Positions 1 to 64,000 of a DNA stretch of 64,000 bases are shown here, piece after piece. The stretch spans positions 16,966,784-17,030,783 of the forward strand of contig CM121341.1 of the NCBI GenBank assembly GCA_051530055.1, in the 5' to 3' direction. Source of the DNA: Neoechinorhynchus agilis. Its lineage: Eukaryota > Animalia > Acanthocephala. Numbering within the stretch: position 1 is the first letter of the stretch; every line of letters starts with the position of its first letter. A model generated the notes under the pieces. The model made no database searches, was not told where the DNA came from, and saw only the letters and a program-made list of their open reading frames with translations. Both the position numbers and the translations under genes were made by a program.

Positions 1-1782
1 CACCCATCTTTCACATCGGTCTCACTCATTTAAATCAGATTTAATAGATTTTCTTCATAAAGTTATGGAAGTCAGCGCCAAGGCGTTCAAAAAATGTGGG
101 ACGATGATCTGAAGCCATTTTAGGCTGACCAAAATCTAGATCTTAAACGCCAAAGGTATCAATTGAATAATAATCAAATGAAAGACCGACGACTTGCTTT
201 AAACCGCTGCAGTTCGCGATAAAATTCATGACTTGATTTCAAGTCATATTATACTTTTACGATGAAAAGATACCTTAAAGTATCATTCACGAATTTTAGT
301 TAAGAATGTTTTCCAATGCACCACCTACTTAGAGCGTAAAAAAACGAAATCATGACAAGTGAAAATAACTGAATTTCCGAACTTAGAAAATTCGTCCACT
401 GGTATTCGAATCTATAACATTTTTAAAAGCGCAACGCAATTTCTGCAAAATCTCGAGAACTCCGGTGCGCTTAAAAGAGAAATCATTTTTAGACATAATA
501 ATACATATTCGCATTTTGCCATTTAGAAAAATCAAAGTTTATTTTTGTCTTTGGAATAACATTACAAATGCTAACTGTCTCTGCGTTTAATCTTCCAAAT
601 AAAAAACTACTTTTTCTTTGCAGAAAAGGATGTTTTTATTGTTGTGGATAAATCCCCAATGCTAAAACTCGTTATTTATAAAATAATCAACGAAAAGAAA
701 CAATGGGAAGTTTTGTCAATAAATCGTTTTATTTTTCGTTTTCCAAGTATAGTAGAACTACTTTTTGTTGCAAATGAATTTTACGTTCCTTACCGGTTTT
801 GTAGATTCTGTTCTACAATTTTCCATTCATTTTTCGCATTAATTTTTATTGTTAAAATTGTTAATAATGGTTACGTGGATTTAAAGGAAACACGATTTTT
901 TTGTCTTAGAGTTTATTGAACCGGTTTTAGGGATCACTGTACGAATATATTTAAACATTGTCGTATTATCTGGGTGCAATGATTGTGAAATAATCTTTGC
1001 ATCGAAAATTGAGGTTTTCTATTAATTTTTTAACAATTTAATGCAGATATATATATTGAATCAATACAATTCGAAGCTTAACTGCGGCGAAAAGAATTGT
1101 TTTTATAAATGGACAATTCTTTGCGCTAAAATTTGTCGATGCCGTCATTTTAAGTTTGAATTGGATAAAAACGCATTTAGAACAAACCACGCGCTATTTT
1201 CTAAAAATAAAAAGGAATCTGTCGATACGCGAGATACCGGATTAATTGATTGAATTTGGTTTTTTCATTCAGAATATTCGCTATGTAAGTGGGAATTAAG
1301 CTGAAGGTCACCCTCCAGCTTTTAAAGATTGAATCCATTGCTCCGATGAAGCCTCACAGCCCTAGTTCTAAACTAATCTTGCGAAATACTATTGTCAGCC
1401 GCATGATTGATCAAGTTTTGCTTTCGAAAATTTTTTTTAGCATTTTCGAGCCTCCGCCGTCTTACGGCTTAGGTTCAGGAATTTTTTAATTGTTTTATTT
1501 CCACAATCTCAAGTTCCCTTGACTCGTTGTTATTTAGGTCGCTTATCAACATCCACGAGGGATTATTGAAGAAGAATGTACACTTCGACTAATTGAGTCA
1601 GTCATTTTATCAATTCGCTTGTTTTTGCTAAGGAAAATACAAGAAACCCCGTGATTTTCCCGAAAGAAGTTTCAAATCGCGTGTATAACTGAAATATTTT
1701 CAAGGATCAAAAGAGTTTCTGACGAGTGCAGTTCTTTTTCCTAGTGCTACATTTCCTTTAAAATCTTAAATTGAGACCAAAA

Positions 1783-1890
1783 GCTGATGATCCGAGAACA
1801 GGGACATTCCTCCTTAAAACATTAGGCTGGTTGTGCAACGGGGGGGGAGCGCTGCATCCGACCTATTGACCATTACAAAATGGACGGCAA
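1783..1890 (+). mobile_element. 3' remnant of CRE-type non-LTR element (second copy ~20826-20933)
   Basis: Translates DPRTGTFLLKTLGWLCNGGSAASDLLTI, resembling the CRE C-terminal motif GDPRA..FL.QR.S.A.QRGNAAS. Similar to 38300-38370 and 52675-52740. Confidence 0.55.
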
Positions 1891-1963
1891 AACGGCGATT
1901 TAATGATTAAAATAAACGCCAATAACGCATGAAACTACATTCCCGTCATTTTGAAACATTCAG

Positions 1964-2868
1964 ATGAGCTCTTGCGTGTTCTACAAATTCCGAAGCGACC
2001 TCAATTACGAGTCCTTGACATTTGAAGGGATCTCGATGACCGTTGGAGAATTTAAGAACACTTTAATGAAAAAGATAGGAATGCTCAAGCACGCCTCCGA
2101 TTTTGAACTCGTCTTAACAGACGCGCAGACGAACGAAGGTACTTTTTGAGATTTCATCTTTAAATAATAAAAAATCACTTTTTAGTGTACAAATACGGTA
2201 ATCAGAAAATCCCGAAAAACTCTTGTATAATCCTAGCTAGAGTTCCATCTTACGGTGCCTCTCATTTGCCAATGAACTGTGAAGAAGAAAACGGACCCGG
2301 TGTTGCCGAAATCCTCGCTGCTGCCATTAAAGATCCTTATGAACTTAAACGAATCCAGGAACCACCCCCGAAAAGAGTTATTATAAAGCGACCGCGATTT
2401 GTTCCATTGGCCGGTCTTCACTTCATCAAGTGCAAAATATGTAATAAACTGATGTTGGACCCCGTGCAAACCCATTGTTGCCACGCCAACTATTGCGATT
2501 CATGTCTTGAACGATTGGAGAATTGCCCCGTTTGTGGAAAAGAGGAAATGGGACCATTTATTCCTAATCAGTTTTTAAGGCTAAAAATAAAGAATTTATA
2601 CGCGATTTTAGAAGACAAGGAAGGGAACAAACAACTGCTCAAGAAAATCGATCCAATACTGGAGAAACTGCTAGAAGATGAAAAAAGCTTTAAATGCGTC
2701 TTCAAGGCTAATCTTTCTGTTGTTCTGAATGAAATCGAAATACCTGTTGGCAAGAATCGAAAACGGTCACGACCTCCATTATTGTCAGAAGAAGAGTTCA
2801 ATGTTATTAAACGAACTAAATGTGAGTTGCAATGGAAAGTAAATGACCACTTACAGTGGATGTTGTGA
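1964..2868 (+). CDS. RBBP6: RBBP6/Mpe1-like protein (DWNN ubiquitin-like domain + RING), 2 exons
   Basis: Exon 1 MSSCVFYKFRSDLNYESLTFEG..DFELVLTDAQTNE is DWNN-like. GT-AG intron 2139-2185 restores EVYKYGNQKIPKNSCIILARVP. RING: CKICNKLMLDPVQTHCCHANYCDSC..CPVC. Confidence 0.85.
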
Positions 2869-3247
2869 TTTTCATACAATACGTCGATTATGTCGAAAAA
2901 TAAATCTATAGCTCTAGATGATTTTGCAACTTGTCAAGGACATTATAAAAAAATTAAGTGGTATTTTACATGAATATGTGATGGAAGATTAAAATCGTTT
3001 ATCTAGATATCCACAGCATTCGATTTTTAATTGAATATACTTTATTAAAGATCCCACGGTATTTTAAAAACTTGAAGTTTTTTGGTCTACGTTTTTATCT
3101 AATGAGTGGTTCGGAAAATCCCAATGGAGATATCTTCTCAATAGATTCTTATAAAATACGGATTCAATACAAGGATTATAATATTTAGACGAGAATATAT
3201 TTTGAATTTAATAATAAAATATCAAGCCCATCTCCTATGCTTCAGAT

Positions 3248-3571
3248 TTATATATCCTTATCAATATTGTCACGTTCTTCTTTTAAACGTTTGGTCTTAA
3301 ACCCGCTATGTTGATATTTGTCCAAATTAGTTTCAGGGTCCTCATACTCTAGGCTTGAACAAAAAACATCATAGACGCGCTGTTGATTAAGTCCTTTGAT
3401 GTTACCAAAGCATTGGTCAAGAAAATCGAAATCGTTTTGATTTAACATTTTTTTAAGCGGATATTTACTAAATTTCCTTATACGAACAACGGAAATATCG
3501 TTCTCATCGTCTCTAAGCGCATTCACTTTCCGAGACGGCATTGGAAGAAGACCAGAACGCTGAGCGTACAA
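3248..3571 (-). CDS. Unknown ORF (duplicate at 22291-22614)
   Basis: 107+ codon frame that stays open some way upstream. No family recognised. Confidence 0.3.
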   Translation of the reverse strand: MYAQRSGLLPMPSRKVNALRDDENDISVVRIRKFSKYPLKKMLNQNDFDFLDQCFGNIKGLNQQRVYDVFCSSLEYEDPETNLDKYQHSGFKTKRLKEERDNIDKDI

Positions 3572-56519: not shown

Positions 56520-57787
56520 ATGAATACTGTCCTCTTTTCGATATTAATCACCGTTGCCCTTGTGCAGCATTCGTATCCAACGGAACTGACGTTCAATTTA
56601 CCAGCCGGGAAAAAGCAATGTTTCTATGAAGAATCAAAACGCATTGAAGTTGATGTGGCTCTTCAGTTCCAGGTCGTTGCCGGTGGACATGATGACGTAA
56701 ACGTTGAACTCTATTCTCCGTCAGGACAGTTGTTGTTCTCGGTTAAACATGAGGACTATGGTCAATATTTTAATTCTACAACTGAAACGGGAATTTACAA
56801 GCTATGCATTAGCAACGAGTTCTCCACAATGACAAGCAGGCTAGTCTACTTTAATTTTGAGATTGATGAGGAAAGTGAAGAGGATGAGCGAATCTCTGGG
56901 AATGGTGTAGGAAGGCACGCAGGACCTTTGACATTGTTCGCAGCAAAATTAAAAGGTATTCATGCAAATTTGGATAAAATCCAGGAGGCGTTGACTTTAA
57001 AGCGCTTATTACGACCAGGCTTAAAATCTAATTTTTAATACGATAGTCTTTTGAATACGAATTCAATCCAATGCTCGTCACAGTCTTGTTTAAATAAGTT
57101 CTATTCGTTTTAAATCTTCGAATATCGTTTCTACTAGCCTTGTAAAATGCTACTTAATTCGCCAACCGCATGTTCAAGCTTTGTATTTTCGAAAATGGAC
57201 GCTTGAGAGAGGGGAGGGCTATTGTAATGACAAAAAAAATTTTTTTTAGAGCTTTCGACAACTTACGGCTTCGGCATACATTTTTTAAAAGCGAATTGTT
57301 TTCTCAACTTTTTTGAATTTAATTGGACGCTTGAGAGAGAAGGTTGTTGTAATGGCAAAATGAAAAATCTTTATATTTTAGAGCTTTCGATGTCTTACGG
57401 CTTAAGCTCAGGAATCTACAAAGTGGTGTGGAGATGTAAAGTGGGTTTTAACATAGCGACATCGAAGCCCTGAGGAAAACATAAGAATTCGAAAGGTTGG
57501 AGGGTAAAGTTTCTTTTTGTCATTACAGAAGGCTTCCCTGTCAAGTGTCCATTTTCGAAAAAGAAACCTTTTTCATTTCCCGTTCCAAATTTTATTTTTA
57601 ACCTTTGAACTAAAATATAGTCCTAATACGCGCTCCACAACGCCTGTCAGAATCTCATGACCGATTCATGTTAAAGAAACTCGGCAGGAAAGTTCGGAAT
57701 TGGAGTGTTGGTCAATTGATGGTGATCGCATTGATTGGATTTGCACAGGTTATGCTTGTTAAGAGTTTCTTTTATAATCGAAGATAA
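56520..57787 (+). CDS. TMED7: p24/TMED (gamma subfamily, TMED7-like), 2 exons
   Basis: ELTFNLPAGKKQCFYE..FQVVAGGHDDV..YKLCISNEFST..VYFNF. Last exon 57621-57787: RKVRNWSVGQLMVIALIGFAQVMLVKSFFYNRR*. Confidence 0.88.
57165..57570. mobile_element. MITE-like element in the TMED intron (related pieces at 1395-1490, 20440-20530, 56019-56375)
   Basis: TTTTCGAAAATGGACGCTTGA..TGTAATGACAAAAA and its inverted copy at 57515-57565, with an internal ~135-bp duplication. GTCTTACGGCTTA.G.TCAGGAAT shared with ~1460. Confidence 0.55.
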
Positions 57788-57860
57788 CAAAATTCGTAAT
57801 GACTATACGCTTCAAATTTGTCTTTTCGTGTTTTTGCAACCTTTCAAACTAAAACTTTAG

Positions 57861-58244
57861 ATGTCGTCTCAGCGATTACGTGCCAATGATCTTCGAAAAA
57901 AGAGTCGAGATGAACTGGAGAAGCAATTGGCTGAATTGAAACAAGAACTAACGACGGTCCGTGTCTCGAAAGTCGCGGGGGCGTCTGGTTCGGTTAAAGT
58001 CGGTAGAATTCGTCAGATCCGGAAATCGATTGCTCGTGTTTTGACCATCATGAATCAAATGCAAAAGGAGAATTTGATAAAGTTGTACCAACACAAAAAA
58101 TATAAACCGATCGATTTGAGACCAAGACTTACAAGAGCTCTGCGTCGGAGACTAACTCCATATGAAGCAAAGAAGAAGACCAGGAGGACAATAAGGCGGG
58201 AAAGACTATCTCGTCGAAGAATGTATGCGCTTAAAGCCGTTTAG
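57861..58244 (+). CDS. RPL35: 60S ribosomal protein L35 (uL29)
   Basis: LRKKSRDELEKQLAELKQEL..IRKSIARVLT..KYKPIDLRP. Confidence 0.98.
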   Translation: MSSQRLRANDLRKKSRDELEKQLAELKQELTTVRVSKVAGASGSVKVGRIRQIRKSIARVLTIMNQMQKENLIKLYQHKKYKPIDLRPRLTRALRRRLTPYEAKKKTRRTIRRERLSRRRMYALKAV

Positions 58245-58920
58245 ACAAATCTTGTTCAATTAAGACCACCCTTTTGAACGTATTTGTTTCAAAACCATTT
58301 TCGTTTTAGTGAACAAATCTCCGGTTCGAAATGATGATCATATTTAAAACTATAATTAAGGTCTGAAACAATGACCATTCTGAATTTTCGCGGCGAACGA
58401 AAAAAATAGGCTAGAATAATTATTCCTCAAGAAGCCTTTTTAACTTTTCATCCTTTCCGTTGTCGTTTTTACGTAAGGAAATTAAATTTTTCAGCACCCA
58501 AAATTTTTTTTATTCGCTCCTCCAATTAAACTTCGTTTAGTCGTTTAAAGATAAAAAATGGAAGTGATGATAATGAGTTAAATTGAACATTGAAATGTGC
58601 CTAATTGGCCAAATGAACACCTCTGTTCTTATTCATTCTCAATTTTTCTTCCCGGTCACAACTGCTGATTGGTATTTGTTGAAATGATGATTCGCAATTA
58701 CGATTTGTTTTTCGCCATTTTGGTTTTTTCTATTTCGTTACTTTGTCTTGTTATCTGACCGGCATAGAAGTTCGCTGGGCCGCCTTCTCTTTCTGAGCAT
58801 TTAAATTTCTTTGTGGAATTTATTATTTTGATCATTCTAAAAATTTTCATTGATTAAAATAAAATGCATTCTTTAATCTAAGTTTTTTGCTTGAATCTCA
58901 TAATTTGTTTTATATGAAGG

Positions 58921-58999
58921 ACGGAAATGATGATCCCGAATTTAATTGAATAGTGAAATGTGCTTAAGCGGCCAAATGTGTTCCTCTCGTCTGATCCGT
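58921..58999 (+). ncRNA. Box C/D snoRNA S2, guide complementary to the 28S sarcin-ricin loop; copies at C-box 58927, 60052, 61176, 62296, 63423
   Basis: C box ATGATGA 58927-58933, D box 58991-58994, stem ACGGA/TCCGT. Guide GTTCCTCTCGT pairs 11/11 with ACGAGAGGAAC. Confidence 0.75.
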
Positions 59000-59487
59000 T
59001 TCTAGATTTTTCGTTTTTTGCTTCAAGAGTTCATTTCCAATCTATATTTTTAATTATTTCTGATACGTTCGCGGCATTTTCATAGATATTTAAATCTTAG
59101 TCCGGTTGTAGCTTTTAGAATCAATAAATTAGACATGCAATTTTAGTTCCAATGTTTTTTCATAGATTTTATTATGTTTTTAAAGTTACTGTACAAAAGT
59201 TGCACGCTTTTCAATTATTTTATTTGCTGCTTAATGGACGATGTCATTGAAACTCAATAGTTCAATGAGTTCGCTTAGCCAATCGCACTTTTTTATGCGT
59301 TCTGTTAATGCTTTCGAAAGCTCTCGTTTTTATGCTTTCGGTTAACTTAGATTTTTCTCATTTCATCTTAAAGACAAGATAATAAAATGATATTGAATTC
59401 TACTATTCCTGAAATGATTATTTAAAGCTGGAATTACTGTCTGAAAAATGACGATTTCTTTAAATCTGACCGGACATTTTGATCTAA

Positions 59488-59557
59488 GTCAAATGATGAC
59501 CATCTGACGATTCTGAACTTTCGTGACGACATGGGATTGTCTCGTTCGTCTGATGAC
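59488..59557 (+). ncRNA. Box C/D snoRNA S3, predicted 18S guide (probable human Am1383 equivalent); copies at C-box 59493, 60619, 61740, 62864, ~63990
   Basis: C ATGATGA 59493-59499, D' CTGA 59513-59516, C' GTGACGA 59523-59529, D 59550-59553, stem GTCA/TGAC. Guide GTCTCGTTCGT pairs 11/11 with 18S ACGAACGAGAC. Confidence 0.85.
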
Positions 59558-61926
59558 CTTTCTAAATTTTACTTCCTTTCCGTTGTCGTTTTTATGGAAG
59601 GAAATTAATTTTTTAGAGCACTCAAAATTTTTTTATTCGCTCCTCTAACTGAACCTCTTTTAGCCCATTAAAGATAAAGAATGGAAGTGATGATAATGAG
59701 TTAAATTGAACATTGAAATGAGCCTAATTGGCCAAATAGCACCGCTTGTCTGATTCATTCTCAGTTTTTATTCTCGGTCACAACTCCTGATTTCCATTTG
59801 TTGGAATGACGATTCGCTAGTTAGATTTGTTTTTTTGCCATTTTCGTTTTTTCTATTTCGTTACTTTGCATTGTTATCTGACCGGCGTAGATGTTCGATG
59901 GGCCGCCTTCGATTTCTAAGCAATTTAATTTTTTCATCCAATGAATTATTTTTGTTCAAGTGGAACTGTTTCATTTATAAAAATAAAATGCATTTTTTTA
60001 ATTGAAGTTTTTTGCTTGAATCTCATAATTTGTTTTATATAAAGGACGGAAATCATGATCTAGAATTTAATTGAATAGTGAAATGTGCCTAAGCGGCCAA
60101 ATGTGTTCCTCTCGTCTGATCGGTTTCTGGATTTTTCGTTTTTTGCTTCAACATTTCATTTCCAATGTATATTTTTAATTATTTCTTATACGTTCGCGGC
60201 ATTTTCATAGGTATTTAAATCTTAGTCCGGTTGTAGCTTTTAGATCCAATAAATTAGACATGCAATTTTAGTTCCAAGTTTTTTTCATAGTCTTTATTAT
60301 GTTTTTAAAGTTACTGTACAAAAGTTGCACGCTTTTCAATTATTTTATTTGCTGCTTAATGGACGATGTCATTGAAACTCAATAGTTTAATGATTTCGCT
60401 TAGCCAATCGCACTTTTTTTATGCGTTCTGTTAATGTTTTCGAAAGCTCTCGTTTTTATGCTTTCGGTTAACTTAGATTTTTCTCATTTTGTCTTAAAGA
60501 GAAGATAATAAAATTATATGGAATTGTACAATTCCTGGAATGATGATTTAAAGCTGGAATTACTGTCTGAAAAATGACGATTTCTTTAAATCTGACCGGA
60601 CATTTTGATCTAAGTCAAATGATGACCATCTGACGATTCTTAATTTTCGTGACGACATGGGATTGTCTCGTTCGTCTGATGACCTTTCTAACTTTTACTT
60701 CCTTTCCGTTGTCGTTTTTACTGAAGGAAATTAATTTTTTTAGCTATCAAACAATTTTTTATTCGCTCCTCTAACTGAACCTCTTTTAGCCCATTAAAGA
60801 TAAAAAATGGAAGTGATGATAATGAGTTAAATTGAACATTGAAATGAGCCTAATTGGCCAAATTGCACCTCTTGTCTTATTCATTCTCAATTTTTATTCT
60901 CGGTCCCAACTCCTGATTTCCATTTGTTGAAATGACGATTCGCAAGTTCGATTTGTTTTTTGCCATTTTCGTTTTTTCTATTTCGTTGCTTTGTCTTGTT
61001 ATCTCACCGGCATAGAAGTTCGCTTTACCGCCTTCTCTTTCTGAGCATTTAAAATTTTTTGAGGAATTTATTCTTTTTGTTCAATGGAAACTTTTTCATT
61101 TATTAAAATAAAATGCATTCTTCAATCTAAGTTTTTAGTTTAAATCCCATAATTTGTTTTAGATAAAGGACGGAAATGATGTTCCCGAATTTGATTGAAT
61201 AGTGAAATGTGCCTAAGCGGCCAAATGTGTTCCTCTCGTCTGATCCGTTTCTAGATTTTTCGTTTTTTGCTTCAAGAGTTCATTTCCAATCTATATTTTT
61301 AATTATTTCTTATACTTTCGCGGCATTTTGATAGATATTTAAATTTTAGTCCTGTTGTAGCGCTTAGATCCAATAAATTAGACTTGCAAGTTTAGTTCCA
61401 ATGTTTTTTTCAGTCTTTATTATGTTATTTAAGTTACTGTACAAGAGTTGGATGCTTTTCAATGATTTTATTTGCTGCTTAATTGACGATGTCATTGAAA
61501 CTCAATAGTTCAATGAGTTCGCTTAGCCAATACAATCTTTTTTATGTGTTCTGTTAATGTTTTCGAAAATTCTTGTTTTTTTCTTTCGGTTTTAAAATTT
61601 TTTCTCATTTCGTCTTAAAAAGAAGATAATAAAATGATATTGAATTCTACTATTCCTGAAATGATTATTTAAAGCTGGAATTACTGTCTGAAAAATGACG
61701 ATTTCTTTAAATCTGACCGGACATTTTGATCTAAGTCAAATGATGACCATCTGACGATTCTTAATTTTCGTGACGACATGGGATTGTCTCGTTCGTCTGA
61801 TGATCTTTCTAACTTTTACTTCCTTTCCGTTGTCGTTTTTACGGAAGGAAATTAATTTTTTTAGCTATCAAACAATTTTTTATTCGCTCCTCTAACTGAA
61901 CCTCTTTTAGCCCATTAAAGATAAAA

Positions 61927-62006
61927 AATGGAAGTGATGATAATGAGTTAAATTGAACATTGAAATGAGCCTAATTGGCCAAATTGCACCTCTTGTCTGA
62001 TTCATT
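61927..62006 (+). ncRNA. Box C/D snoRNA S1, predicted 28S guide for the yeast Gm2791 (snR48) equivalent; copies at C-box 58564, 59687, 60813, 61934, 63058
   Basis: C box GTGATGA 61934-61940, D box CTGA 61997-62000, terminal stem AATG(G)AA/TTCATT. Guide GCACCTCTTG pairs with 28S CAAGAGGUGY; D+5 is the G. Confidence 0.75.
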
Positions 62007-62738
62007 CTCAATTTTTATTCTCGGTCCCAACTCCTGATTTCCATTTGTTGAAATGACGATTCGCAAGTTCGATTTGTTTTTTGCCATTTTCGTTTTTTCT
62101 ATTTCGTTGCTTTGTCTTGTTATCTCACCGGCATAGAAGTTTGCTTTACCGCCTTCTCTTTCTGAGCATTTAAATTTTTTGAGAAATTTAATCTTTTTGT
62201 TCAATGGAAACTTTTTCATTTATTAAAATAAAATGAATTCTTCAATCTAAGTTTTTAGTTTAAATCTCATAATTTTTTTTATATAAAGGACGGAAATGAT
62301 GATCCCGAATTTTTATTGAATAGTGAAATGTGCTTAAGCGGCCAAATGTGTTCCTCTCGTCTGATCCGTTTCTAGATTTTTCGTTTTTTGCTTCAAGAGT
62401 TCATTTCCAATCTATATTTTTATTTATTTCTTATATGTTCGCGGCATTTTTATATATATTTAAATTTTAGTCCTGTTTTAGCGCTTAGATCCAATAAATT
62501 AGACATGCAAGTTTAGTTCCAATGTTTTTTCATAGTCTTTATTATGTTATTTAAGTTATTGTACAAAAGTTGGAGTATTTTCAATGATTTTGTTTGCTGC
62601 TTAATTGACGATGTCATTGAAACTCAATAGTTCAATGAGTTCGCTTAGGCAATACCACCTTTTTTATGTGTTCTGTTAATGTTTTCGAAAATTCTTGTTT
62701 TTTTTGCTTTCGGTTTTAAAATTTTTTCTCATTTCGTC

Positions 62739-62815
62739 TTGATGAGAAGCCCATAAAATGATATTGAATTCTACTATTCCTGAAATGATTATTTAAAGCT
62801 GGAATTACTGTCTGA
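62739..62815 (+). ncRNA. Box C/D snoRNA S5, predicted 18S guide for yeast Um578 (snR77) / human Um627 (SNORD65); D boxes at 59441, 60567, 61688, 62812, 63938
   Basis: Guide AGCTGGAATTACTGT pairs over 15 nt (2 G-U) with 18S GCGGUAAUUCCAGCU; D+5 is the U. C box TTGATGA is present only in the last two units; C' is ATGATTA or ATGATGA. Confidence 0.8.
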
Positions 62816-63171
62816 AAAATGACGATTTCTTTAAATCTGACCGGACATTTTGATCTAAGTCAAATGATGACCATCTGACGATTCTGAACTTTCGTGACGA
62901 CATGGGATTGTCTCGTTCGTCTGATGACTTTTCTAAATTTTACTTCCTTTCCGTTGTCGTTTTTACGGAAGGAAATTAATTTTTTAGAGCACTCAAAATT
63001 TTTTTATTCGCTCCTCTAACTGAACCTCTTTTAGCCCATTAAAGATAAAGAATGGAAGTGATGATAATGAGTTAAATTGAACATTGAAATGAGCCTAATT
63101 GGCCAAATAGCACCTCTTGTCTGATTCATTCTCAGTTTTTATTCTCGGTCACAACTCCTGATTTCCATTTG

Positions 63172-63257
63172 TTGGAATGACGATTCGCAAGTTCGATTTG
63201 TTTTTTTGCCATTTTCGTTTTTTCTATTTCGTTACTTTGTATTGTTATCTGACCGGC
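63172..63257 (+). ncRNA. Box C/D snoRNA S6, predicted 18S guide for the human Cm517 (SNORD56/U56) equivalent; copies at C-box 58684, 59806, 60932, 62053, 63177
   Basis: C box ATGACGA 63177-63183 (ATGATGA in the first unit), D box 63249-63252, stem GTTGG/CCGGC. Guide TGTATTGTTAT pairs 11/11 with 18S AUAACAAUACA; D+5 is the C. Confidence 0.75.
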
Positions 63258-64000
63258 GTAGATGTTCGATGGGCCGCCTTCGATTTCTAAGCAATTTAAT
63301 TTTTTCATCCAATGAATTCTTTTTGTTCAAGTGGAACTGTTTCATTTATAAAAATAAAATGCATTTTTTTAATTTAAGTTTTTTGCTTGAATCTCATAAT
63401 TTGTTTTATATAAAGGACGGAAATCATGATCTCGAATTTAATTGAATAGTGAAATGTGCCTAAGCGGCCAAATGTGTTCCTCTCGTCTGATCGGTTTCTG
63501 GATTTTTCGTTTTTTGCTTCAACATTTCATTTCCAATGTATATTTTTAATTATTTCTTATACGTTCGCGGCATTTTCATAGATATTTAAATCTTAGTCCG
63601 GTTGTAGCTTTTAGATCCAATAAATTAGACATGCAATTTTAGTTCCAATGTTTTTTCATAGTCTTTATTATGTTTTTAAAGTTACTGTACAAAAGTTGCA
63701 CGCTTTTCAATTATTTTATTTGCTGCTTAATTGTGCGATGTCATTGAAACTCAATAGTTCAATGAGTTCGCTTAGGCAATATCACCTTTTTTATGTGTTC
63801 TGTTAATGTTTTCGAAAATTCTTGTTTTTTTGCTTTCGGTTTTAAAATTTTTTCTCATTTCGTCTTGATGAGAAGCCAATAAAATGATATTGAATTCTAC
63901 TATTCCTGAAATGATTATTTAAAGCTGGAATTACTGTCTAAAAAATGACGATTTCTTTAAATCTGACCGGACATTTTGATCTAAGTCAAATGATGACCAT

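Follow-up and report, generated by a model that had tools for sequence, protein, structure and literature searches.

Tandem array of a five-gene box C/D snoRNA-type unit directly behind RPL35 in the acanthocephalan Neoechinorhynchus agilis

The window analyzed here, a stretch of 64,000 nucleotides of Neoechinorhynchus agilis DNA (assembly GCA_051530055.1, contig CM121341.1, positions 16,966,784 to 17,030,783, forward strand), ends within a tandem array that begins close behind the ribosomal protein gene RPL35. RNA-seq indicated that the RPL35 mRNA is trans-spliced to a spliced leader (SL) at 57861, a mode of processing used by the host organism, and that its poly(A) end lies at ~58265-58278, leaving a gap of 45-58 nt to the array start. 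A repeat search of the window from ~58320 to 64000 gave start-to-start spacings of 1,121-1,127 bp, which were taken as the unit length; the window takes in four complete units, preceded by a diverged first one and followed by the beginning of a sixth. When one unit was compared by BLAST with the window tail and the next 20 kb, 13.7 head-to-tail copies were found in the assembly, and the array ended ~9.85-9.9 kb beyond the window end, at about window-equivalent position 73855 (G000:C1 ~17040640). Retroelements adjoin this 3' end. DNA-read joints inside the array stepped back by 1107-1121, and DNA read depth was ~225-270 at the conserved parts of the unit versus ~15 in the flanks, which corresponds to 15-18 array copies. 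Spacings, BLAST, and read joints thus bore out the tandem 1.12-kb repeat described in the first-pass annotation. Its term "satellite" is overstated, the whole array measuring ~15.5 kb with about 14-18 copies.

Every unit contained five C/D-like segments of 69-86 nt, designated A to E, in + orientation throughout as had been claimed, with ~740 bp of each 1.12-kb unit being spacer. Segments A and B are separated by 12 nt only. The + strand of the array is T-rich, with an AT skew of -0.14 to -0.25 versus ~0 elsewhere. The B-C interval contains an element whose 20-nt core is invariant in 14/14 units and unique to the array; folding of the spacers gave one significant hairpin, on the opposite strand only (z=-4.4; + strand z=-0.6). 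Neither a tRNA nor a recognisable promoter was found in the unit.

Table 1 Positions of the putative snoRNA copies and neighbouring features, numbered from the first nucleotide of the window.
Feature	Position	Strand	Remarks
RPL35 (uL29), single-exon CDS	57861..58244	+	directly upstream of array
Tandem array of 1.12-kb five-snoRNA unit	58323..64000 in window, continues beyond	+	repeat search, BLAST, reads
A0, edge copy: A homologue fused to truncated B	58323..58400	+	canonical ATGATGA C box; diverged guide, 18S match lost
A	59406..59474	+	C box ATGATTA, non-canonical; D' guide 15 bp to 18S U575
A, best copy in window	60532..60600	+	canonical ATGATGA C box, better terminal stem
A	61653..61721	+	C box ATGATTA
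A	62777..62845	+	C box ATGATTA
A	63903..63971	+	C box ATGATTA; D' box CTAA
B	59487..59558	+	D' box CTGA; predicted D guide to 18S A1360, D' guide to 28S G (L015:3903)
B	60613..60684	+	D' box CTTA
B	61734..61805	+	D' box CTTA
B	62858..62929	+	D' box CTGA
Conserved hairpin and T-run after B	59573..59604; others at 58450, 60699, 61820, 62944	+	once per unit
C, edge unit	58556..58638	+	D box CTTA; diverged guide
C	59679..59760	+	E paralogue; D guide without rRNA target
C	60805..60886	+	D box CTTA
C	61926..62007	+	
C	63050..63131	+	
D, edge unit	58679..58763	+	C box ATGATGA; orphan
D	59801..59886	+	C box ATGACGA, D box CTGA
D	60927..61011	+	D box CTCA
D	62048..62132	+	D box CTCA
D	63172..63257	+	
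E	58919..59002	+	canonical boxes and stem; predicted D guide to sarcin-ricin loop
E	60044..60127	+	C box ATCATGA; stem mismatch
E	61168..61251	+	C box ATGATGT
E	62288..62372	+	canonical
E	63415..63498	+	C box ATCATGA; stem mismatch

Each of the five segments has a C-box-like variant of RTGAYGA and a 3' CTGA (in the RNA, RUGAUGA close to the 5' terminus and CUGA close to the 3' terminus), and these boxes decay from copy to copy. Canonical copies were found in 12/13 units for B, in 2/13 for A (the C box being ATGATTA in the other 11/13), and in 4/14 for E, half of whose 10 non-canonical copies also have a stem mismatch. The C box of snoRNA C is canonical in 12/14 units, and that of D is the variant ATGACGA. 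As for the D box, CUGA was present in all units for A (13/13), B (13/13), and E (14/14) and in 9/14 for both C and D, having been lost from 5/14 units in each case. A short stem joining the C and D boxes was read from the sequence as GUCA/UGAC in B, 7 bp with one bulge in C, ACGGA/UCCGU plus G-U pairs in E, and 4 bp in A where its copies are canonical (two of them). The stem of D is weak (2 GC and 2 GU); the first-pass annotation had described terminal stems in four of the five segments. For each of A, B, and E, canonical boxes together with stems are kept in at least two to twelve copies. No Rfam family matched at its gathering threshold in the whole window; the Rfam check of the unit that had been proposed yielded only sub-threshold C/D family matches, all on the + strand, and no H/ACA family match in the unit even at E<=10.

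The best copy of A (60532..60600) scored 30.7 bits against Rfam snR77 (gathering score 50), and A scored 22.9 bits against snoR77Y (gathering score 52). In the sub-threshold alignment, the guide and D' box of A have the register of snR77, and the guide follows the family consensus position by position. A has in common with snR77, SNORD65 (HBII-135), and snoR77Y, which form Rfam clan CL00057, the D' guide, the box spacing, and the predicted target, namely the U of GGUAAUUCC in the 530-loop region of 18S, whereas it differs from the curated clan in its score under the gathering threshold and in the C box AUGAUUA of most copies. The snR77-type target is yeast Um578, equivalent to human Um627 and Arabidopsis Um580/582; snR77, HBII-135, and snoR77Y, which target Um578/Um627/Um580, trace to LECA. 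Judged by its sequence, A belongs to this ancient snR77/SNORD65/snoR77Y guide type.

The guides were compared with the 18S, 5.8S, and 28S rRNAs extracted from the same genome assembly (G000), with shuffles as the null model. Antisense pairing of at least 10 bp, ending at a D or D' box with the target in the fifth-nucleotide register, was found for the guides A D', B D, B D', and E D. The A D' guide pairs over 15 bp with 18S U575 (13 Watson-Crick (WC) and 2 GU; P=0.005 or lower), and U575, at position 5 of this duplex, is the snR77/SNORD65 site. The other three form perfect, box-anchored duplexes of 11 WC bp (P=0.004-0.006 each): B D with 18S A1360, B D' with a G in 28S domain II (L015:3903), the counterpart of yeast Gm805 being 11 nt further 3', and E D with the sarcin-ricin loop, in which the nucleotide opposite the fifth guide position is the alpha-sarcin G at L016:4770 (G2661 in E. 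coli). Judged by its rRNA context, A1360 looks like the human Am1383/Arabidopsis Am1330 site. The + strand of the unit contained eight perfect rRNA complements of at least 11 nt versus 1.87 in dinucleotide shuffles of the unit (P=0.001), three of which end exactly at a CTGA or CTTA box (shuffle mean 0.02; 0/1000 shuffles reached three); the - strand contained two, neither of them box-adjacent. Position-free complementarity of the RNAs to rRNA with G-U pairs allowed was not above that of the shuffles, so that the rRNA-guide case rests on box adjacency. For C and D, the guides at the D box were no better than shuffles against the species' own rRNA (P ~0.8-0.9); the 5' half of C pairs over 13 bp with 18S 1215-1227, beside a degenerate TTGA D' box. 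B is a predicted double guide (18S via D, 28S via D'), C is a diverged paralogue of E, and D is an orphan with no significant rRNA target.

The first-pass annotation had listed five in-register rRNA targets. Three of them held against the species' own rRNA, that is, Um578/Um627 for A in the register of snR77, the human Am1383-type site for B, and the sarcin-ricin loop for E, and the matches to human Cm517 and yeast Gm2791 were not reproduced; complementary sites are present for A, B, and E and absent for the D guides of C and D. The concern voiced there was that shuffled units might match rRNA equally well; none of the 1000 shuffles gave three box-adjacent 11-mers.

Variable columns between units amounted to 4.9% in guides, 13% in boxes, and 23% in spacers, about five times fewer in guides than in spacers (P=3e-4), and nucleotide diversity was 0.038 in the snoRNAs versus 0.086 in the spacers. 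In a genome-wide search, the array was the sole location of guides A, B, and E in the assembly. In the RNA-seq data, which came from poly(A)-captured libraries, word depth in the array was 0-19, while RPL35 reached 900-3400 and an intron 15-28. Both snoRNAs and spacers were covered by RNA contigs 94-303 nt long with a depth of 2-19, a signal that DNA carry-over of a 15-copy repeat could also give. At this very low poly(A) RNA-seq coverage, neither an RNA contig spanning several snoRNAs nor an RNA-specific splice joint within the array was seen.

Taken together, the locus is probably a multi-copy box C/D snoRNA array in which a minority of intact copies works, supplied by multi-snoRNA precursors. 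In each snoRNA, this intact minority would be assembled into working snoRNPs with fibrillarin, NOP56, NOP58, and SNU13, which would 2'-O-methylate the predicted rRNA positions. The copies would be cut from long precursors derived either from an array-internal Pol II transcript or from read-through past the RPL35 poly(A) site; exonucleases would then shorten these until the cores shielded by the snoRNP remain, as happens in the clusters of yeast, plants, and euglenozoans. The units would stay alike through unequal crossing-over, which would also let box-dead copies drift.

The array might also be a decaying satellite: unequal crossing-over would have multiplied an ancestral snoRNA cluster, most or all of the array would by now have lost its function, and the uniform guides would be due to recent homogenisation and not to selection. 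Such decay would be in line with the widespread box damage (ATGATTA in 11/13 copies of A, 10/14 non-canonical copies of E, and CTGA missing in 5/14 of C and of D), with C and D guides that lack any rRNA match at the D box, with trace RNA coverage only, and with the adjoining retroelements. However, homogenisation alone does not predict guide columns ~5x less variable than the spacers of the same units; moreover, no other place in the genome supplies the deeply conserved Um578-type guide or guides B and E, and two to twelve copies at least of each of A, B, and E retain canonical boxes and stems. We consider this outcome unlikely. Slightly less likely still is an array that is functional and not polycistronic, each snoRNA or A-B pair forming its own short unit (e.g. 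Pol III or snRNA-type Pol II) that ends at T-runs. Runs of 5-7 T occur ~10-40 nt after B, C, D, and E, the array-specific 20-nt element and hairpin between B and C are strongly conserved, and no long RNA contig crosses several snoRNAs, all of which would suit separate units; but the internal T6-T7 runs of snoRNA D would stop Pol III, A and B lie just 12 nt apart, the unit has no tRNA or recognisable promoter, the conserved 20-mer is absent upstream of other loci, and RNA contigs lie over spacers as well as snoRNAs. Chance resemblance, i.e. an AT-rich satellite in which RTGAYGA and CTGA motifs and some words complementary to rRNA occur by accident, would accord with the lack of an Rfam match at gathering score and with position-free complementarity at the shuffle level, yet it is very improbable given that three perfect 11-mers stop precisely at a D or D' box (0.02 expected, 0 on the other strand), that the A guide has the snR77 register, that the C and D boxes are bordered by terminal stems, and that conservation is higher in guides than in spacers.

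The E snoRNA may possibly, though we hold this only tentatively, direct 2'-O-methylation of the G in the sarcin-ricin GAGA tetraloop (E. coli G2661, the alpha-sarcin cleavage G). To our knowledge, no methylation of this G is known in yeast or human. Ribotoxins of the alpha-sarcin type cleave using the ribose 2'-OH of this nucleotide, so that a mark there would make ribosomes resistant. If true, the mark might tune GTPase activation, and E would be a new guide born by duplication and divergence within a snoRNA array, as the C/E paralogue pair illustrates. The mammalian H95 methylation site in the literature, Gm4618, lies by count ~12 nt further 3' than the alpha-sarcin G.

As described in PMC6562600 and PMC2784804, among others, the snoRNA clusters of Euglenozoa (trypanosomatids, Euglena gracilis) are tandemly repeated and polycistronic. 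The present array resembles them in its head-to-tail units (13.7), each carrying different snoRNAs (five) in the same orientation and separated by short spacers, and in a host that uses SL trans-splicing. Unlike them, it resides in an animal and has many copies with damaged boxes; its polycistronic transcription is putative, and its unit yielded no H/ACA snoRNA, where the euglenozoan clusters mix C/D and H/ACA. Adjacent rRNA-guide C/D snoRNAs on one strand, here with a putative shared precursor, are also seen in the yeast snR72-snR78 and plant C/D clusters, which are single- or low-copy in contrast to the 14-fold tandem array. The yeast cluster includes snR77, the guide type of snoRNA A. Tandemly repeated C/D snoRNA genes occur in an animal genome in the mammalian imprinted SNORD115/116 and SNORD113/114 loci (described in PMC2766290). 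There, each repeat carries a single snoRNA, intronic in a repeated non-coding host gene, and the guides are orphan or non-rRNA ones, whereas the present unit has five snoRNAs, of which at least three have predicted rRNA guides, and the array showed no splice joints. The same genome contains a 142-bp unit repeated ~33 times with SNORD74/snoR44-type matches (L018) and a 160-bp unit with SNORD24-type matches (L017). Compared with such arrays, which have one or two snoRNAs per 142-286 bp unit, the present one is set apart by five genes per 1.12 kb, by a location immediately downstream of a ribosomal protein gene with high expression, and by the putative sarcin-ricin guide.

The individual RNAs are mostly ordinary, and it is the repeated layout that is unusual for an animal, with many copies that look damaged. 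Animal rRNA-guide snoRNA genes usually lie in host-gene introns. Syndermata, the lineage concerned, combine very small genomes with SL trans-splicing. Genes in such arrays would escape annotation through repeat masking, so that snoRNA counts for these genomes would fall far short. With its near-invariant guides and with intact copies beside box-dead ones, the array offers a natural system for the keeping and loss of multi-copy guide RNA genes. If some copies work, rRNA-guide snoRNA genes of the Syndermata lineage would reside in satellite-like tandem arrays, as in euglenozoans, and not in host-gene introns.

The spacing of direct repeats was 1,121-1,127 bp from ~58,320 to the end of the window; this 1.12-kb repeat had been missed by TRF because the period ceiling of that program was 500. 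BLAST of one unit, extended to the 20 kb of contig beyond the window, placed the end of the array at about window-equivalent 73,855 and gave 13.7 units, all in a single orientation and with 90-97% identity to the query unit. The whole-genome DNA reads (X8) contained joints stepping back ~1,110-1,121, as a tandem array predicts. Their depth was ~225-270 in the conserved parts of the unit versus ~15 in the single-copy flanks, indicating ~15-18 copies and hence no bad collapse in the assembly. The tandem repeat proposed in the first-pass annotation was borne out by the repeat spacing, BLAST, and the read joints. T-richness was marked on the plus strand of the array. The 3' end of the array abuts minus-strand retroelement remains with RT-like and gag/zinc-knuckle-like ORFs (L006:1-5000, the stretch just 3' of the array; G000:C1:17040784-17045783, where G000 is the genome assembly and C1 to C3 are its contigs).

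The layout of the unit was read from a 14-row alignment of units. Five segments, A, B, C, D, and E (69, 72, 82, 86, and ~84 nt, respectively), each carried a C-box-like motif toward its 5' end and CTGA toward its 3' end, with complementary bases flanking them. A and B were separated by 12 nt, and the remaining spacers were T-rich and 40-400 nt long. E of one unit and C of another were 78% identical over 65 nt by BLAST, indicating that they are paralogous. In the first unit, the edge copy of A (A0) had a canonical C box and a diverged guide, and was joined to a truncated B. Downstream of B, a hairpin was followed by a T-run, and the 20-nt core of the hairpin showed no variation in 14/14 units. 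This 20-mer was ruled out as a general promoter element, since genome-wide it was confined to the array. When the ~740 bp of spacer was searched for an H/ACA snoRNA or other structured RNA, the folding z-scores were ordinary except for one hairpin, and the unit spacers gave no H/ACA family match. A tRNA-snoRNA dicistron was dismissed because the unit contains no tRNA. Just 3' of B, 13 nt perfectly complementary to 18S 1805-1817 (AGGAAGUAAAAGU, near the 18S 3' end) extend into the conserved hairpin with no D or D' box adjoining; they lie at unit consensus 235-247 (window 59567-59579, and the equivalent spot in each unit).

The guides were examined against the rRNA of the same genome, in which the rDNA was found by short universal patterns and the 18S, 5.8S, and 28S were bounded with Rfam. 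As shown in the table, four guides, belonging to A, B, and E, paired in register, with the nucleotide to be methylated at the fifth position from the box. The rDNA unit was 17.9 kb, and in every unit examined the 28S was split between Rfam LSU model positions ~2343 and ~2389 by ~8.6 kb; the insert is probably an rDNA-specific non-LTR retrotransposon.

Pairings of the array guides with rRNA, and the 28S insert (D and D' guides are the antisense stretches preceding the D and D' boxes; L015 and L016 are rDNA stretches)
Feature	Pairing or content	rRNA nucleotide (fifth from box for guides)	Location
A, D' guide	15 bp (13 WC + 2 GU)	18S U575	L015:666
B, D guide	11 perfect bp	18S A1360	L015:1451
B, D' guide	11 perfect bp	28S G	L015:3903
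E, D guide	11 perfect bp to sarcin-ricin loop ACGAGAGGAAC	second G of GAGA	L016:4770
C, candidate site		18S C1216	L015:1307
28S insert	rRNA orientation; 1266-aa ORF with reverse transcriptase domain		L015:5479 to L016:4113 (G000:C2 ~253478-262112)

The score of A was reached by at most 0.5% of shuffled guides, and an anchored 11-nt Watson-Crick run occurred in 0.4-0.6% of shuffled-guide trials. The plus strand of the unit contained eight perfect rRNA complements of at least 11 nt, where dinucleotide shuffles gave 1.87 (P=0.001). Of the eight, three ended exactly at a CTGA/CTTA box, where 0.02 were expected, and three or more such complements appeared in 0/1000 shuffles; the opposite strand had two complements of at least 11 nt, neither of them box-adjacent. 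Position-free complementarity scored with G-U pairs anywhere in the RNAs was not above that of shuffles. The comparison with shuffled units, which the first-pass annotation had named among its refuting conditions, therefore separates the box-adjacent complements from chance and leaves position-free matching at the shuffle level, so that the support rests on register and not on the existence of matches. Outside the array (window 1-58000, both strands), 378 16-mers preceding CTGA included two anchored perfect rRNA complements of 11 nt and eight of 10 nt. This is about the chance rate, and further single-copy snoRNAs could be among them.

Rfam, to which the first-pass annotation had also pointed, gave no match at gathering score across the 64-kb window and only sub-threshold ones at E<=10. 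Among the latter, A aligned with snR77, and the guide, the D' box, and their spacing matched base for base. snR77 (yeast Um578), HBII-135/SNORD65 (human Um627), and snoR77Y (Arabidopsis Um580/582) form one clan dating to the last eukaryotic common ancestor. The Um578/Um627-type target that had been assigned to the array was recovered in the species' own 18S. Genome-wide (46.2-Mb assembly, <=1-2 mismatches), the A, B, and E guides were confined to the array; if Um578-type methylation, which is deeply conserved, is present in N. agilis, its guide must come from the array. The D guide target of B, ACGA[A]CGAGAC, is by our reading probably the human Am1383 / Arabidopsis Am1330 site, and to this extent the earlier assignment of a probable Am1383 target also held. 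The D' target of B is located 11 nt to the 5' side of the G matching yeast Gm805 and is presumably yeast 794; by simple offset, it is tentatively placed at the Arabidopsis Um803 position.

The predicted sarcin-ricin target was confirmed as a pairing of E, with the alpha-sarcin G at the methylation position. In the literature, mammalian Gm4618 is the only H95 methylation found, and by our own count it is ~12 nt downstream of the target G of E. Methylation of the alpha-sarcin G directed by E would be a so-far undescribed site, and this guide is the sole element of the array that could hold new biology.

Two further targets named in the first-pass annotation, and with them its claim of five matches in register, did not survive. 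At the position of Cm517, the species' own 18S reads AAUAACGAU, to which the guide of D forms only ~7 bp including one G-U pair; in the part of the 28S containing Gm2791, the best pairing by any unit guide was <=8 bp. For the D guides of both C and D, the scores fell below the shuffle mean. In C, a stretch beside a degenerate UUGA D' box is complementary over 13 bp (12 WC + 1 GU, P=0.005) to the conserved GGCUCAAUUUGACUCA loop of the 18S; we regard this as a candidate site only. Three other pairings were discounted: the D guide of A with 18S A1172 (14 bp, mismatch at position 2, P ~0.1); an 18-nt complement of D (15 WC, 2 GU, 1 mismatch) to the GGCGAAAGACUAAUCGAA region of the 28S, which has no following D' box and a position-free P of 0.33; and 15 bp between the 5' half of E and variable 18S 736-750, for which the exact sequence was present in 2/14 units and off register with a GTGA D' box.

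Column variability was computed among 12 full units. Variable columns made up 4.9% of the guides (P=3e-4 vs spacers), 13% of the boxes (P=0.04), and 23% of the spacers, and snoRNA diversity was less than half of spacer diversity. Set against these signs of function, boxes were frequently non-canonical. The C box of A was AUGAUUA in 11/13 units, and both AUGAUGA copies had the better stem. That of E was AUGAUGA in 4/14 units, AUGAUGU in three, and AUCAUGA in seven, the AUCAUGA copies having a stem mismatch. CUGA was absent in 5/14 units for C and likewise in 5/14 for D. From these alignments, the array looks like a multi-copy gene family, with a few apparently usable copies of each snoRNA and the rest drifting.

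Runs X2, X3, and X5 were recognized as RNA because the 638-nt intron of a TMED-like gene is skipped there and kept in the DNA run; they agree with published poly(A)-captured N. agilis libraries. RPL35 (57,861-58,244), directly upstream of the array, was intronless and strongly expressed in the RNA contigs, and its poly(A) site at ~58,265-58,278 places the mRNA end 45-58 nt short of the array. Word depth was 900-3,400 in RPL35, 15-28 in the intron, and 0-19 in the array (short contigs only), where poly(A)-captured libraries would miss small non-polyadenylated RNAs and a 15-copy repeat is the first signal expected from trace DNA. The layout suggests that the array may be transcribed polycistronically.

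The RPL35 ATG was preceded by a 21-nt leader, ATATTTAAAAACTTACAAGCA, at an AG acceptor (AG|ATG), which is not encoded upstream (window 57840-57861; contig depth 922). This is direct transcript evidence of spliced-leader trans-splicing. The 21-mer occurred 316 times in the genome, its reversed control not once, and some copies were 326 bp apart, resembling SL RNA genes (G000:C3:3310655-3311327). The TMED-like gene, with its one intron (56999-57636), and RPL35 lie on the same strand with 73 nt between them (window 56521-58278), and RNA contigs span the two (57637-57890); the arrangement looks operon-like. The intron (57036-57636) contains an internal duplicated segment. DNA reads there, with a strand-switch joint at 57409/57534 and loose ends at 57394, suggest that the sample is polymorphic for a small insertion, either inverted or mobile.

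Taken together, the first-pass interpretation was right in its core: the feature is a tandemly arrayed set of C/D snoRNA genes, and in-register rRNA guides are present in at least three of them; many copies are damaged. In the literature library searched, there was no account of snoRNAs from rotifers or acanthocephalans. Clusters of snoRNA genes that are tandemly repeated or polycistronic are known from euglenozoans, plants, and yeast, and tandem snoRNA arrays in animals have been described at mammalian imprinted loci. The RNAs of the present array are of known kinds, and its layout is already known outside animals. Two further tandem arrays of C/D snoRNA genes in the same genome were examined, one with a 142-bp unit in ~33 copies and snoR44/SNORD74-clan matches (E ~1e-5), and the other with a 160-bp unit and SNORD24-like matches. 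The five-gene array thus belongs to a genome-wide pattern, from which its five-gene unit and its location behind RPL35 set it apart.
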